Shown one piece after another: positions 6,229-61,003 of a stretch of DNA of 64,000 bases. The stretch is taken from sequence record PV662128.1; one strand, 5' to 3'. Numbering within the stretch: position 1 is the stretch's first letter; each line of letters starts with the position of its first letter. The notes below the pieces were generated by a model. That model had not been told where the DNA came from. It saw only the letters and a list, made by a program, of their open reading frames with translations, and did no database searches. The position numbers and the translations under genes were made by a program.

Positions 6229-6563
6229 CTCTTATGGATTTATTTTTAATTAATTAATATTAAACCTAGGATATTATAGTATAATTAGTTCTAGCGCTAT
6301 ATATTAGGCCTTCGGCCTAAAGGGCTAGGGTAAGTCAATTCGTTCGTTTCAGCATCAATCAAGGTATTCGCTACGCTCATACTTTCTTATGCTTACACTC
6401 ACCCATGCAATCTGGAGAGAAACCCCGACTGAACAAAGTTATTTATTCCTTCTCAGGGGAATAAATAGTTCGTCGGATAAAGACATAAGATAACAATCGT
6501 TTCGTAAAGAAATACCAAAACGATAACTTATTAGACGAACGTAATAATCAAAAGGAGATAACG

Positions 6564-6680
6564 GTGAATATCGTCATGATATTAAAACTACTCGGAGGGT
6601 TACTCATCTTAGGGGTAGGGTTTGGATTACTGGTTTATCTCATTGTTAAACTCTCTGTTAAAATGGTGTATAAGAAATGA
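6564..6680 (+). CDS. 38-aa single-TM peptide (not in ORF track)
   Basis: AAGGAG SD, GTG start, MNIVMILKLLGGLLILGVGFGLLVYLIVKLSVKMVYKK; ATGA overlap with next gene. Confidence 0.6.
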   Translation: MNIVMILKLLGGLLILGVGFGLLVYLIVKLSVKMVYKK

Positions 6681-7586: not shown

Positions 7587-7628
7587 TCTTATGCAATATT
7601 TTTTAATCTTAAAACGTGGGGTGGGTAA

Positions 7629-43395: not shown

Positions 43396-44040
43396 ATGGC
43401 AACTCCGCGTAAAAAGAAACCCGCAACAAAAAACCGCATGACTTTCGAACAAAAACGTCTGTCTGAAATCATTAAGAAAGTCTATCACGAGCTCTATTTT
43501 GTCGGGGCGTCTTTTTATAAACCGACGGCGGTTAACGCCAATAAGCTCTTCTTGGGGGCGCAGGGTAAAGAAGTACATACCGCCAGGAGAATTCTATTAG
43601 ATCATTTGATCAGCCTTAAGACGAACTGGCCTTTATGGGTTGGGTGCTTCTTTAACACGCCTAATGGAATCTCTGTGGCTACTGCAGACTCCTTATGGGA
43701 AAATGAGACGATGTTATCCTTCGGGGGTCAGTTTCATAAAAGGATCGATAGCATCGTGGATGGGATTATCGAAGCCGAGGCTGATACCGATTGCACTCGG
43801 GAAACGTTGATAGGATACGGGTACTTCTTTAGCCACTGCGACATCTACAACATGTCTGGGACGGACGAACGTTTAGTAAAACTGATGCTCCCTTATATGG
43901 ACAAACACTTGGCTAAAGAAGTTAAACCGGAAGATGTTGTCATTAGTACCGACCTTTTGATTGAATCGATCGTCAAACGTGGTGGGGTGGCTAAAGATGG
44001 CAAAATAGAAGAATACATCGAGGTGTCGGAGGAGTGGTGA
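43396..44040 (+). CDS. Hypothetical protein
   Basis: 214 aa; TTAGG-N7-ATC-ATG start. Confidence 0.75.
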   Translation: MATPRKKKPATKNRMTFEQKRLSEIIKKVYHELYFVGASFYKPTAVNANKLFLGAQGKEVHTARRILLDHLISLKTNWPLWVGCFFNTPNGISVATADSLWENETMLSFGGQFHKRIDSIVDGIIEAEADTDCTRETLIGYGYFFSHCDIYNMSGTDERLVKLMLPYMDKHLAKEVKPEDVVISTDLLIESIVKRGGVAKDGKIEEYIEVSEEW

Positions 44041-49441: not shown

Positions 49442-49774
49442 ATGAAAGCGATGATTTTGGTTGAGAGGGATTTCACGCCAAAAGAGATTATGGAGTTCGG
49501 CATTCCTGGGTTGACGTTTGATACAGTCGGACCCAATCAAATAAGTGACAATCGATTTGACTTCCCTCAGAGAAAGGCGCTGGGTGGAGATAAGGATGTC
49601 ATTCTGGTCTCCCAGGAAATACCTGGGATCGTTACAACCAGACTTTTCTTTATTGAATGCGGTGAATTTGCGAAGTTAATGTGTCACACACCATTCCCCC
49701 TAATAAACATGAGGATGGAGGAATACATCGTGGATAACTTACATCGAGCCGTTTTAATTACCGAGGGTCAATGA
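49442..49774 (+). CDS. Hypothetical protein, tandem paralog of next gene
   Basis: MKAMILV...ILVSQEI...IECGEF. Confidence 0.65.
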   Translation: MKAMILVERDFTPKEIMEFGIPGLTFDTVGPNQISDNRFDFPQRKALGGDKDVILVSQEIPGIVTTRLFFIECGEFAKLMCHTPFPLINMRMEEYIVDNLHRAVLITEGQ

Positions 49775-49775
49775 A

Positions 49776-50102
49776 ATGAAAGTTATTATTCAGGTGCTCG
49801 AAGACAGAGAAGTTGATATCATCGAGGCCTTAGAAAAAAGTTTGTTCATCCCCCATTTCTATTTCGTACATCGGGGACGGGATAAACGAGAATTCTTAGG
49901 GGAGGACGACGATTCTATTTTGATCATCTCACAGGAGTTGGTCGATTGTTGCCCCGAACTGGCTGTATTGGAATGCGGGGATTTGGAACAACTGTGTTTC
50001 TCCCAACGCCGCACCAAGACCGAAAAAGAGGTTATCATCGAATACCTCAAAGCCAATCGAGAAAAGATTATCAAAGTCAGTGACTTGCCGGGGTACTATT
50101 AA
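49776..50102 (+). CDS. Hypothetical protein, tandem paralog of previous gene
   Basis: MKVIIQV...ILIISQEL...LECGDL. Confidence 0.65.
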   Translation: MKVIIQVLEDREVDIIEALEKSLFIPHFYFVHRGRDKREFLGEDDDSILIISQELVDCCPELAVLECGDLEQLCFSQRRTKTEKEVIIEYLKANREKIIKVSDLPGYY

Positions 50103-50296
50103 TGACCGCTCGTTACTTCGCAGGGGATTTCCATTTAGGAGATCCTTCGATCATCAAATATCGTAAGCAGTTTAAAACGGTAAAGGAGCACGATGAATTT
50201 ATCGCTGATACGATTTTAGTTAAACCTCGTGATCACGACGTGTTAACCATCGTAGGTGACGGGCTTATGTTACTTTTGTTTGTGATTAACCTTTAG
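50102..50296 (+). pseudogene. 5' fragment of a calcineurin-like metallophosphoesterase
   Basis: YFAGDFHLG (DxH), KYRKQF.TV.EHD, VGD; homology stops after the GD motif. Confidence 0.85.
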
Positions 50297-50308
50297 GAAA
50301 ACAACATC

Positions 50309-51448
50309 ATGTTTGTTCTTAAGAAAGCTAAACTCCGACTCTATAAAGAGGACGTGGAGTTAGTTAATCGCACGTTTGGTTGTCGGAGATTCTTATGGAA
50401 TCAATTATTAGGGCTACACAAAGATCAATACAAGAAATGGGAGGAAGATAATGCGTTAGGGAAACCTAAAGTAACCATTTCTGCGTTTAGGGAAGAATTT
50501 AAACGTATTAAAGTCGAATATCCTTGGTTAAATGAGGTAAGCTCGGTTGCCTTATATGAAACCATTACTGATCTTTATAATGCTTTTCAGAGATTTTTTA
50601 AAGGTTTGTCCGGGTATCCTAAATTTAAGTCTAAAAGAGGCAAGCAATCTTTTCGTATCGCCTCTAGAGTTAATATGTATATAGAGGGTAATCGGATTAG
50701 ATTCCCTAAATCTAATTATTATGCCAGATTTTCTAAAAATACTGTCTTAAAAGATCCCTCTTCGTACACCGTAATTAGAGATAACGTGGGAGATTATTTT
50801 ATTTCCTTTGTAGATACCGTCGACGAGATTGAACCTGAACCAGAAAGTAAAGGTAAGTTCGTTGGGATAGACTTAGGGATTAAATCTTTAGCGGTTGTTA
50901 AACCTAGTAATGGGGAACCTTGGGAATTAATCAATCCTAAAACATATACGAAATACCAAAAACGTAGAACGACGTTATCTCGTCGTTTAATGAAAAAGAA
51001 AAAAGGGAGTAATAACCGGAACAAAGCCAGAATTAAACTGGCCAAATTAGAACGTAAAGTTGCTAATATTCGCAAAGACCTTTTACACAAATTTACGACT
51101 AAGCTGATTAAAGAAAACCAAATGATCAGTATCGAAGATTTGAATGTAAAGGGTATGGTTAAAAACCATAAGTTAGCTAAACATATTCAAGATTGTTCTT
51201 TTGGTACGATTAGAACAATGCTGGAATATAAAGCTAAGCGTTATACTAAACCGAAAGTCATCACTATCGTTAATCGATTCTTTGCAAGCACTCAACTCTG
51301 TTCTCAGTGCGGTGTTCTCCCTAAAGAGCGCATCGGACTTAAAATCAGGAACTGGACGTGTTGGAATTGCGGAACACATCACGATAGAGATGTCAATGCG
51401 GCTACGAATATCCTTAACGAAGGATGTCGTTTAACTCAAGCTTCCTAG
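50309..51448 (+). mobile_element. tnpB: IS200/IS605-family TnpB RNA-guided endonuclease; no tnpA in window
   Basis: N-terminal FGCRRFLWN; RuvC-I GIDLG, RuvC-II IEDL, Zn finger CSQC..CWNC, RuvC-III DRDVNAATNI; all three acidic residues intact. Confidence 0.95.
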
Positions 51449-51575
51449 GTTAAGGGTATTGATTACCCCTACCCTTGGTCTAAGGGGAAGTTAAGCCTGT
51501 GGAGACAAGCTGCAGTAAGGGCTTTCCGTGAAGCAGGAAGTTGAAATATACAAGACAGCTCATTTGCATGATAAA
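51420..51575 (+). ncRNA. Putative TnpB omega-RNA (scaffold plus guide); ends approximate
   Basis: Typical right-end motifs GGAAGTTAAGCCTGTGGAG (to 51504) and TGAAGCAGGAAG (51529-51540); flanking gene resumes by 51558. Confidence 0.65.
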
Positions 51576-51716
51576 GTGATCGAAGACGAACGTTACATCG
51601 GAGTGTCGTTAGAACAAACCGGCTATCGTTTAATCCATCACGATGAGATCTTATCTGGTTCTTATCGCACTTATCGTAAACCGACACTTGAAGACCATTT
51701 GCATTTAGGAAAATAA
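51558..51716 (+). pseudogene. 3' fragment of the same metallophosphoesterase
   Basis: AHLHDKVIEDERYIGVSLEQTGYRLIHHDEILSG aligns with paralog AHMHTDTLYDNRYVNVSMEATNYRLISVDEILNG (60251-61003). Confidence 0.85.
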
Positions 51717-51718
51717 CT

Positions 51719-52093
51719 ATGGGTCTTGATATCGACATTGTCAAGTTTAAGAAACCCGATTTCGATAGGTTAGCCGACAATAATAGAAGGGTCGACTATC
51801 ATGAAGGCACGGGTTTGAATATTGAAACAGATTGTTTGTTTTACTACCGCAAGCATTATTGCATCCAAGATATGCTCGGCCATGTATCGAATGGTAGATA
51901 TGACCAATGTACTTTCCATGAACTTACTAAGGAAAGATTAGAGCGGGCAGTAAAACTCGCTACTCGTCTGAAGCGAAGTGAGGACGATCGGTGGGAGAAA
52001 GAAGAATTAGATATCCTCATTCGAGATATAAATGTCATTTTAGCAGAAACCGATTTTAACACATCGGTTATTTCTTTAAGCTGGATAAGTTAA
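51719..52093 (+). CDS. Conserved phage hypothetical protein (MGLD...YxRK...ETDF type)
   Basis: MGLDID, FYYRKHY.IQ, ILAETDF. Confidence 0.7.
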   Translation: MGLDIDIVKFKKPDFDRLADNNRRVDYHEGTGLNIETDCLFYYRKHYCIQDMLGHVSNGRYDQCTFHELTKERLERAVKLATRLKRSEDDRWEKEELDILIRDINVILAETDFNTSVISLSWIS

Positions 52094-52104
52094 TCGGAGG
52101 GAAT

Positions 52105-52335
52105 ATGTCCTCACCTTGGGATTTTCCGGAAGGGATGACGGTCACTGAATTAAAGGAGTTAATTAAAGACTGGCCAGAAAAGCATCAGGATGGGACTCCC
52201 ACGAGAATACTTGTGGATTATGAAATAGTGAAGTCTATTTCGCCTACTAACTGGCAAGATGCTGGAGGAGAACACCCCACATCTGATTTGACCTTTCTAA
52301 GCAACCATTATATCGCAAAGGAACTATTTAACTAG
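52105..52335 (+). CDS. Hypothetical protein
   Basis: GGAGG SD; GMTVTELKELI..WPE. Confidence 0.7.
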   Translation: MSSPWDFPEGMTVTELKELIKDWPEKHQDGTPTRILVDYEIVKSISPTNWQDAGGEHPTSDLTFLSNHYIAKELFN

Positions 52336-52346
52336 GAGAGAAAATT

Positions 52347-52637
52347 ATGGCTCGTAAACCTTCTACCGTAGGCGAGATTATTAAGAAAGAGTATCTCGAA
52401 CCGATGAACATGAGTATGATGGAACTCTGCCGTCAGACTCATTCGAGCAAGGGCGCTATTTTTCATCTGATTAATGGCAAAAATCGTCTGAGTATTGAGA
52501 TGGCGTTTAAACTCGCTAAGCTTTTTAACACGTCCGAAGAGTATTGGCTGAATATTCAGCGTCAGGTAGATCTTTACGAAGCTAAGCGGGATAAAGAGCT
52601 TAAGGCGACGTTAAAGAAAATCATCCCTGTTGAGTAG
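52347..52637 (+). CDS. higA: HigA-family HTH antitoxin (orphan)
   Basis: VGEIIKKEYLEP.NMS..EL...I..LING...LS.EMA.KLA.LF.TS.EYWLNIQ..DL. Confidence 0.85.
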   Translation: MARKPSTVGEIIKKEYLEPMNMSMMELCRQTHSSKGAIFHLINGKNRLSIEMAFKLAKLFNTSEEYWLNIQRQVDLYEAKRDKELKATLKKIIPVE

Positions 52638-60250: not shown

Positions 60251-61003
60251 ATGAGCGATAGGTACGAATGGAGTGACGTTTACGTTACTGGATGTAATCA
60301 CGTGAACGATAAAATCATGTTAAAATACCGCCCTCAGTTTGGTACGATGGCGGAGCACGATGACGCAACCTGGGGTTTGCTTGATCAGGTGCCGGAGGAT
60401 AAGGCAGTCATCTTTTTAGGGGATAATTTCCTTAGTCCGGAGAGCCTGGAACGATTAAAGCAGTATAAGTTTTACAAAATCCACGTACTCGGCAATCATG
60501 ACCTTCAAAATGGGGTTAATATAAAAATGATAACCGACGTGATGGATGAGGTCCACGGCAGTATAAAGGCAGACGGGATATGGTTCTCGCACATCCCAAT
60601 GCATAAGCACGCTTTGGGTCATGGTTATATTAACATCCACGCCCACATGCACACCGACACGTTATACGACAATCGTTATGTTAACGTAAGTATGGAAGCG
60701 ACTAATTATCGCTTAATCTCCGTTGATGAAATACTGAACGGTAAATACGTTCCTTTTTCTTTCCTTCCAGTTGGCCCTAAATTTACAGGCGAGTTCGTAT
60801 TCCCTCACGACGTCCGTTATCTTGACGACGTCATCCTCAATGAAAAAAATGAGACCGTCGCTGAAATTATTAAGATAGAAAGTCGATTGAATGTAACCAC
60901 TGTCTCAGTGAGAATGATGGGGAATAAAAGGGAATTATCTTCGGACGATTTTAGTGTTCATTGGTACAAACCTAAATGGGGTAAACTGGTAGCTAGGGGG
61001 TAA
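60251..61003 (+). CDS. Calcineurin-like metallophosphoesterase (start moved to ATG 60251)
   Basis: GCNH (variant of DxH), LGD, GNHD, SHIP, HAHMH. Confidence 0.88.
   Translation: MSDRYEWSDVYVTGCNHVNDKIMLKYRPQFGTMAEHDDATWGLLDQVPEDKAVIFLGDNFLSPESLERLKQYKFYKIHVLGNHDLQNGVNIKMITDVMDEVHGSIKADGIWFSHIPMHKHALGHGYINIHAHMHTDTLYDNRYVNVSMEATNYRLISVDEILNGKYVPFSFLPVGPKFTGEFVFPHDVRYLDDVILNEKNETVAEIIKIESRLNVTTVSVRMMGNKRELSSDDFSVHWYKPKWGKLVARG

Follow-up and report, generated by a model that had tools for sequence, protein, structure and literature searches.

The genome of Raoultella phage VB_ZK_P1 (PV662128.1; 257,087 bp), a jumbo phage of the chimallin (nucleus-forming) group, contains an accessory metallophosphoesterase gene whose middle has been replaced by a cassette carrying an intact tnpB gene. 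On balance, the cassette is probably a tnpB-only (IS1341-type) element of the IS200/IS605 family, whose TnpB is predicted to cut the intact alleles of related phages and whose family-wide mode of installation accounts for the 214 nt of target gene that are missing. The tnpB gene is among the most abundant in prokaryotes, and TnpB is the ancestor of Cas12. The window referred to throughout is the whole 64,000-nt stretch of the phage genome that was analyzed; window positions equal PV662128.1 record positions minus 124,000, and the 5 kb around the tnpB locus are 100% identical to the record. Six related phages of ~250 kb match at 84-94%, among them Klebsiella phages Miami, phiKp_32, YC1, and KPN8 and Stenotrophomonas phage BUCTxx100. 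Miami has been treated as a distant relative of Erwinia phage RAY, within the chimallin-encoding, nucleus-forming family (10.1101/2023.02.24.529968).

The intact metallophosphoesterase ortholog is a gene of 534 nt (177 aa) that occurs in five relatives (Miami, phiKp_32, YC1, BUCTxx100, and KPN8), where it occupies the same place, directly 3' of a conserved 108-aa gene. VB_ZK_P1 retains a 5' fragment (50102-50262, + strand; allele nt 1-161; 90-95% identity to the five intact alleles) and a 3' fragment (51558-51716, + strand; allele nt 376-534; 89-94% identity). Homology to the intact alleles stops at 50262 on the left and begins again at 51558 on the right, and allele nt 162-375 (214 nt, ~71 codons, including the GNH and SHEP motifs) have been swapped for 1,295 nt (50263-51557). 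The initial annotation had described a replacement of ~210 nt rather than a simple interruption and had suggested that relatives be searched for the intact allele; the five alleles and their base-level junctions bear that description out. Its own reference, which it proposed would buffer the gene loss, was an intact paralogous metallophosphoesterase (60251-61003, + strand), which has an extra C-terminal region and is only 42% identical over 158 aa to the intact Miami ortholog. The disruption read from that comparison is real, and the true orthologs allow it to be read without the paralog. The open reading frame (ORF) that begins with the 5' fragment (50102-50296; translation starting MTARYFAGDFHLGD...VLTIVGDG) encodes the first 54 metallophosphoesterase residues through VGDG, followed by 10 foreign residues from the cassette and a stop at 50294-50296. 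The frame of the 3' fragment is already open within the right end of the cassette, from a GTG at 51528; the translation of this ORF (51528-51716) includes ...AHLHDKVIEDERY..., and the gene sequence from 51558 reads AHLHDKV.... A Pfam scan of the fragments, the intact ortholog, and the paralog returned no family at E <= 0.01, and the phosphoesterase assignment is based on motifs in the translations (GDxH, GD, GNH, H, and HxH) together with the annotations of the depositors.

The cassette (50263-51557) opens with a 46-nt leader, which is followed by an intact ISDra2-like tnpB and by a conserved block at the tnpB 3' end. The tnpB gene (50309-51448, + strand) encodes a predicted RNA-guided nuclease of 379 aa with a zinc finger and with matches to the Pfam families OrfB_IS605 (PF01385), Cas12f1-like TNB (PF07282), and HTH_OrfB_IS605 (PF12323). 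Residues 9-372 give a full-length alignment with ISDra2 TnpB structures (PDB 8H1J, 8EXA; E 4e-55). The copy at the phosphoesterase locus, designated ZK_A, is one of three in the VB_ZK_P1 genome; ZK_B (record position 203,854) and ZK_C (record position 82,177) are 87% and 64% identical to it at the amino acid level. Further copies are found in phiKp_32 (two), Miami (one), and BUCTxx100 (one), and nine more tnpB loci were recovered from metagenome and Sequence Read Archive (SRA) assemblies. Across six copies, the RuvC residues D188, E276, and D361 and both CxxC pairs are present and invariant, as the initial annotation had noted for the three acidic residues of ZK_A. A TldR-type domesticated TnpB, acting as a repressor, was considered and rejected, because no intact copy has lost any of the three acidic residues. 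The ratio of nonsynonymous to synonymous divergence (dN/dS) between copies is 0.11-0.22, so the protein is under purifying selection; dS itself, at 0.45-1.3, greatly exceeds the 3-8% by which the phage backbones diverge, and the copies therefore come from an old, diverse pool.

The right end of the element is sharply defined. When the six copies are compared, the conserved block downstream of tnpB stops at the same base (...AAGACA, ending at 51557) and is followed by complete divergence. This block (51410-51557, + strand, with a provisional 5' limit), which overlaps the tnpB 3' end, is the expected omega-RNA scaffold as predicted from its position and folding. Its helices comprise 34 pairs, with 99.5% of cells paired across the copies as against 32-64% when the partners are slid. 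The helix formed by 51507-51510 and 51521-51524 covaries, with AAGC/GCTT in ZK_A and AAGT/ACTT or GGGT/ACCC in other copies. An Rfam scan of 49500-52500 (E <= 1) found no omega-RNA family and no group I intron. The latter result led to the rejection of an IStron reading, and splicing of an IStron could not restore the gene in any case because 214 nt of coding sequence are missing. Since the conserved right end stops at 51557, the predicted 20-nt guide (GCTCATTTGCATGATAAAGT; 51558-51577, + strand) starts at 51558, directly 3' of the right end, and constitutes the beginning of the 3' gene fragment. The guide start of ~51552 given in the initial annotation is thereby corrected.

This predicted guide matches all five intact alleles at 20 of 20 positions, in keeping with the earlier identification of the guide as the start of the 3' gene fragment. 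The bases 5' of the match, which had been singled out for inspection, form the candidate motif CAYG in all five alleles (CAT and then G in four, CAC and then G in phiKp_32), within the contexts CCATG, TCATG, or TCACG. The region of the paralog equivalent to the guide (GCCCACATGCACACCGACAC) is unrelated to it at the DNA level. In the VB_ZK_P1 genome, with up to five mismatches allowed, the guide matches only the flank of its own cassette, and a second site is absent. This resident target is preceded by the right end AAGACA and lacks the CAYG motif. The intact alleles thus carry both target and motif, and the resident copy has no motif. On in-silico grounds, TnpB could therefore cut the relatives and leave its own genome untouched.

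The motif recurs at other insertions of the family. Among 11 insertion events of clade 1, nine have AYG directly 5' of the target; AYG has a genome frequency of 0.031, and arithmetic from this frequency gives a binomial probability of ~1e-12. The sequence 5' of the target in the empty site is TTATG for the insertions Kp32_1, ZK_B, and L127; AAATG for Miami and INTA; CTATG for an event nested inside an older right end; CCATG, TCATG, or TCACG for ZK_A, depending on the allele of the relative; and TACG for both L117 and L119. The exceptions are L129 (CGTG) and L124 (CTTAT), and three clade-2 copies have CTA/CGA-type contexts. TCGAT, which lies near several left junctions, was tried as a transposon-adjacent motif (TAM) and failed once the empty sites were aligned. 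Site choice may extend beyond the motif. The closest copy pairs, ZK_C/Kp32_2 and ZK_B/L117, sit at different loci. Aligned in register, the two native targets of each pair agree at 9 of 14 positions (background P ~0.003 per pair, with 45 pairs). This likeness hints at a selection of sites beyond a 3-5-nt motif, as seed pairing would give; a comparison of the ZK_A target with the other targets for seed similarity yielded no convincing match. As a separate observation, the clade-1 motif (T/A)(T/A)ATG, with G as the first base, recalls the phiKZ late-promoter consensus TATG, whose G marks the start of transcription (PMC4666361). TATG also lies 8 nt from the tip of some right ends of the Miami/ZK_B/L117 type (...AAAAATATGGGACA). 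The resemblance may reflect coincidence, a target preference, or the provision of a promoter.

In contrast to the right end, the left end of the element has no fixed form. Fourteen independent insertions were analyzed, with the empty site of each located in a relative. The right junction is exact in 14 of 14, and the left junction is canonical in none. The insert extends 4, 17, 19, 21, 22, 40, 46, 48, 55, 60, 87, 96, or 151 nt upstream of the tnpB ATG, and leaders of different subgroups have no homology past a ribosome-binding site (RBS) zone of ~20 nt. Nine events carry left-junction duplications that start from target position 1 (2, 2, 5-6, 7, 8, 8-9, 9, 9, and 123 nt), and four carry target deletions of 21 nt (Miami), 39 nt (INTA), 43 nt (L129), and 214 nt (ZK_A). 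The remaining event is a nested replacement, in which a copy has landed precisely behind the CTATG within an older element's right end, with everything leftward replaced; the older element is undisturbed in L117. The 214-nt loss is the largest member of this family-wide series of left junctions and not a singular event. Replacement of target sequence is not peculiar to the phosphoesterase locus, and the loss is best explained by the mode of installation of the family rather than by a dedicated replacement strategy. Tandem right ends are visible when L019:4190-4275 (SKEH01000004.1) is compared with L117:4231-4285, and the tnpB gene in L019 is frameshifted.

The leader of ZK_A (50263-50308, + strand) illustrates the lack of a canonical left end (LE). 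It has an RBS (AGGAAAA) at 50295-50301, is unlike the leaders of the other copies outside the RBS zone, and is 100% identical in the metagenome contig L116. A DNA hairpin was sought in this leader and none was found, and in a comparison with shuffled DNA, no better folding was seen for the longest leader of the family (z -0.2) or for the terminal 70 nt of the right end (z +1.0). Hairpins upstream of ZK_C were examined as a possible LE and rejected, as the empty site already contains the hairpin, which therefore belongs to the phage. The ZK_A leader and the ZK_B left junction have TTATGTTAC(T/C)TTT in common; the start of the ZK_A leader, CTTATGTTACTTTT (50263-50277), agrees at 12 of 13 positions with ATTATGTT and the ACCTTT that follows it at the ZK_B left junction (L014:16787-16806), a score equaled by 28 of 2000 shuffles. 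The likeness represents either a common leader start or a few bases of donor flank brought along. An apparent case in which Kp32_2 carried 11 nt of the donor guide was discarded, because a closer empty site, that of Miami, has this sequence natively.

These junctions bear directly on how the element is installed. One possibility is a canonical IS200/IS605 insertion directly behind a TAM at gene nt 375/376, with the host or another element providing TnpA in trans, followed by an unrelated deletion of most of the left end and the 214 nt, with TnpB being a leftover or serving in retention only. Such a history would account for a right junction that is exact and lies after a recurrent motif. IS1341-type elements are generally assumed to be mobilized in trans (PMC9956272), and in IMG/VR, more distant relatives (40-44% identity) carry a Y1 tnpA immediately upstream. 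It is nonetheless distinctly unlikely, since nine of the 14 insertions have duplications from target position 1, which insertion plus deletion cannot yield. Leader length and sequence vary by copy, hairpins of the LE and right end (RE) were not seen, and the strong purifying selection on tnpB is ill-suited to a relic. A source of TnpA is also hard to find. A Y1 TnpA profile, built from Pfam-confirmed Y1_Tnp proteins of the distant IMG/VR relatives, matched none of the six-frame ORFs of the 257-kb VB_ZK_P1 genome (best E 0.21), which upholds the earlier premise that TnpA is absent. A scan of 185,579 bacterial genomes in GTDB turned up a single close relative, on a 1.8-kb contig that is itself phage DNA. 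In IMG/VR, a search with the exact right-end pattern had no match, and a protein-pattern scan returned only relatives of <=54% identity.

TnpA peel-and-paste transposition, with or without later deletion, makes no duplications from target position 1, and the left junctions instead fit a repair or template switch that is anchored at the right end. Under the proposed mechanism, the raggedness of the left end would result from break repair or template switching of this kind and not from TnpA peel-and-paste, and the left joints would often form at short homologies to the promoter- or RBS-like leader of the element. Short homologies are indeed frequent at the left joints, including GGGTTTGG in INTA, TCGGAG or GAGGAA shared between a native RBS and the element RBS, and CTATATTAT-type motifs. 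The pattern also resembles the signature of LINE-like elements, with an exact 3' end, a variable 5' extent (4-151 nt), duplications from target position 1, deletions, and 5' microhomology. It could then be imagined that the tnpB mRNA or an omega-RNA precursor, paired to the cut target, is reverse transcribed into the break in a process like target-primed reverse transcription. This route is highly improbable: the geometry of the TnpB cut gives no obvious primer annealed to the guide, the 123-nt duplication and the nested replacement are better suited to DNA template switching, and no reverse transcriptase turned up, although no search for one was made. The VB_ZK_P1 sequence at the site occupied by tnpB in BUCTxx100 (L012:38630-38660; record position ~88,630) is TAAGTAGTT-TCATAACG-AGTAGTT, compared to a single TAAGTTGTT in phiKp_32, and it looks like the footprint of a lost element that had made a 9-nt duplication.

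The allele created at the phosphoesterase locus is not confined to VB_ZK_P1. The exact ZK_A TnpB sequence was not on record in a look-up, and further carriers were found via a 99% relative and a 64-aa ORF that spans the junction. The 99% identical TnpB is encoded on the Joint Genome Institute (JGI) contig Ga0490018_001810 (L116), and the junction ORF is also present on three Logan contigs (L121-L123). All four contigs have left and right junctions exactly as in ZK_A and so go back to a single origin. The JGI and Logan samples with the allele are 3300045375 and ERR12944113/14/22. The surroundings, by comparison, differ. The upstream gene order is not the same in the window, L116, and L121, and the junction allele is found on at least three flank haplotypes, with the cassette 99.5-99.8% identical as against 92-98% for the flanks. 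Between L116 and the window, flank identity is 93-95%, and the nearest mismatches are at 50243 and 50248 on the left and 51602 on the right. The cassette itself has 2 mismatches in 738 nt over 50263-51000, 26 in 346 nt over 51001-51346, and 1 in 211 nt over 51347-51557; the diverged middle tract (7.5%, against 0.3% for the rest of the cassette) looks like gene conversion from a third clade-1 tnpB copy. L121 differs from the window at 50254 and 50257 (5-8 nt from the junction) and at 1 of 619 cassette positions. Overall, flank divergence reaches to within 5-14 nt of the left junction, and a tract of 39-44 nt is held in common on the right. Among the intact alleles, the flank variants occur as standing polymorphisms, arranged in KPN8-like, BUCTxx100-like, or Miami-like blocks, and a right-flank marker at allele nt 414 is common to cassette carriers only.

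The proposed action of TnpB, the cutting of intact alleles, can be stated as a series of steps. In a mixed infection, the TnpB-omega-RNA complex would cut the intact alleles of relatives, and the break would either kill the competitor or be mended with the cassette-bearing genome as template. In the latter case the cassette and the 214-nt deletion would be copied together, a form of non-restorative homing. A young cassette on old, differing flanks, with a short common tract on the predicted cut side, fits what homing would be expected to leave, and is consistent with it rather than proof of it. The homing proposal of the initial annotation thus gains the same junctions on at least three flank haplotypes with a near-identical cassette, although ordinary short-patch recombination also produces a flank mosaic. 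The proposal is a reasonable hypothesis with indirect support.

A related alternative is that TnpB serves mainly as a weapon between phages, excluding co-infecting relatives by cutting the intact allele with little copying of the cassette, while the flank haplotypes arise through ordinary recombination. The perfect guide match in five relatives and the in-silico protection of the resident allele would suit this role, as would purifying selection in spite of the missing transposase and the fact that each isolate has its own set of insertions. An intron endonuclease acts in this way between nucleus-forming jumbo phages (PMC11620839). Cuts in a recombination-proficient phage pool would normally be repaired from the donor too, so that exclusion and homing are hard to part, and the common 39-44-nt right tract fits break-initiated conversion. 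A role confined largely to exclusion is accordingly judged unlikely.

Several points weigh against the favored explanation, that of a tnpB-only element cutting the alleles of relatives. The omega-RNA, the cleavage, and the biased inheritance are all predictions only. The phage nucleus may form a barrier between TnpB and phage DNA. Across six complete isolate genomes, every insertion is a singleton. The TAM is deduced from just 11 sites, including the two exceptions given above (L129 and L124), and the 2-nt duplications could be due to chance. The phage group also displays fine-scale mosaicism, including the tract at 51001-51346, where two carriers of the same allele differ. With mosaicism at a scale of 50-100 nt, heterology could persist while ordinary recombination swaps flanks up to the boundary.

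More surprising than homing is the family-wide pattern of exact right ends, ragged left ends, a strongly selected tnpB, and no transposase found, which raises the possibility of mobility by TnpB alone in jumbo phages. In its strongest form, the tnpB-only element in phages of the nucleus-forming type would be autonomous. TnpB cleavage of cognate and near-cognate sites (motif plus seed), combined with right-end-anchored microhomology copying, would constitute its whole mobility, both same-site homing and new insertions, with no transposase. This idea is tentative and somewhat doubtful; pointers to it are the ragged left junctions, the 9/14 target match in the closest pairs, and the element inside the right end of another after CTATG.

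Other features of the locus and the window are worth recording. In ZK_A (GTG at 51528; window 51528-51716), Miami, and ZK_B (L005:3718-3900; L014:18096), the downstream ORF is continuous with a reading frame in the final ~30 nt of the right end that encodes (M/V)KQE(V/I)E.Y.T, and the tnpB element may thus provide a start codon to any downstream sequence. The surroundings of the locus are hypervariable among relatives (window 49442-49774 and 51719-52335). The presence of a 110-aa gene and of two genes lying between the phosphoesterase and a HigA-like gene (52347-52637) varies among the phages, some of which lack them or have other sequence in their place (phiKp_32, Miami, L116, and L121). The window itself contains the empty sites for five further insertions of the tnpB family, at 6393/6394, 6626-6664, 7594-7600, the 30379 region, and 43896-44018. 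These sites are occupied in phiKp_32 (two), the metagenome-assembled genome (MAG) contig INTA (L018), and the Logan contigs L127 and L124; in occupied form, 43896-44018 has the 123-nt target duplication.

The phage element shares with the ISDra2 TnpB/omega-RNA system (PDB 8H1J, 8EXA) its domain order, RuvC triad, zinc finger, scaffold overlapping the 3' end of the gene, and flank-derived guide. It differs in the lack of a tnpA, a recognizable LE, and hairpins; in the motif 5' of the target, which looks like (W)(W)AYG rather than the TTGAT of ISDra2; and in the duplications and deletions at its insertions, neither of which is made by ISDra2 transposition. The family, at 1.26-1.39 kb and with tnpB as its only gene, resembles the IS1341 group (tnpB-only, 1.25-1.4 kb). 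Yet IS1341 elements are defined by flanking LE and RE, whereas the phage family keeps only the RE and has a left boundary that may lie anywhere between 4 and 151 nt. The autonomy of IS1341-type elements has been described as an open question (PMC9956272).

TnpB-driven retention, in which the vacated site is cut, is established. A TnpB programmed by its insertion site has also been shown to act on element-free copies in a plasmid gene drive, in which an IS spreads through a plasmid population independently of TnpA by TnpB cleavage and biased inheritance (PMC11870625). That case concerns a canonical IS and was demonstrated experimentally; the present case involves a lytic jumbo phage and comparative evidence only, and the target deletion would be co-converted. 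Free-standing and intron-borne phage homing endonucleases (e.g., T4 Seg/Mob and PhiPA3 gp210) offer a second parallel, in that a nuclease gene lies beside or inside a conserved gene, the element-free allele of co-infecting relatives is targeted, and co-conversion tracts are short (PMC13565253, PMC11620839). In contrast to those proteins, TnpB would recognize its target through a guide RNA and a short motif, and the target is redefined at each new site. Competition mediated by endonucleases is documented between nucleus-forming jumbo phages for a protein endonuclease (PMC11620839), and a 2026 review, which calls TnpA-independent spread by TnpB cleavage non-restorative homing, includes co-infecting phages among its theoretical examples (PMC13565253). 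A literature search found no paper on TnpB homing between phages or on a junction signature with exact right and ragged left ends.

The find bears on two open questions: how tnpB-only elements move, and whether RNA-guided homing takes place between viruses. For both, this phage group is a compact natural data set, with 14 datable insertions and their empty sites, one allele on several backbones, and a transposase that was not found. Even if TnpB alone does not drive spread, the locus is still a clear case in which a mobile nuclease cassette has destroyed an accessory gene of a phage. If TnpB alone does drive spread or the exclusion of competitors in lytic phages, the classical homing endonucleases of phages would have in it an RNA-programmed counterpart, and this would help explain the persistence of tnpB in viral genomes.

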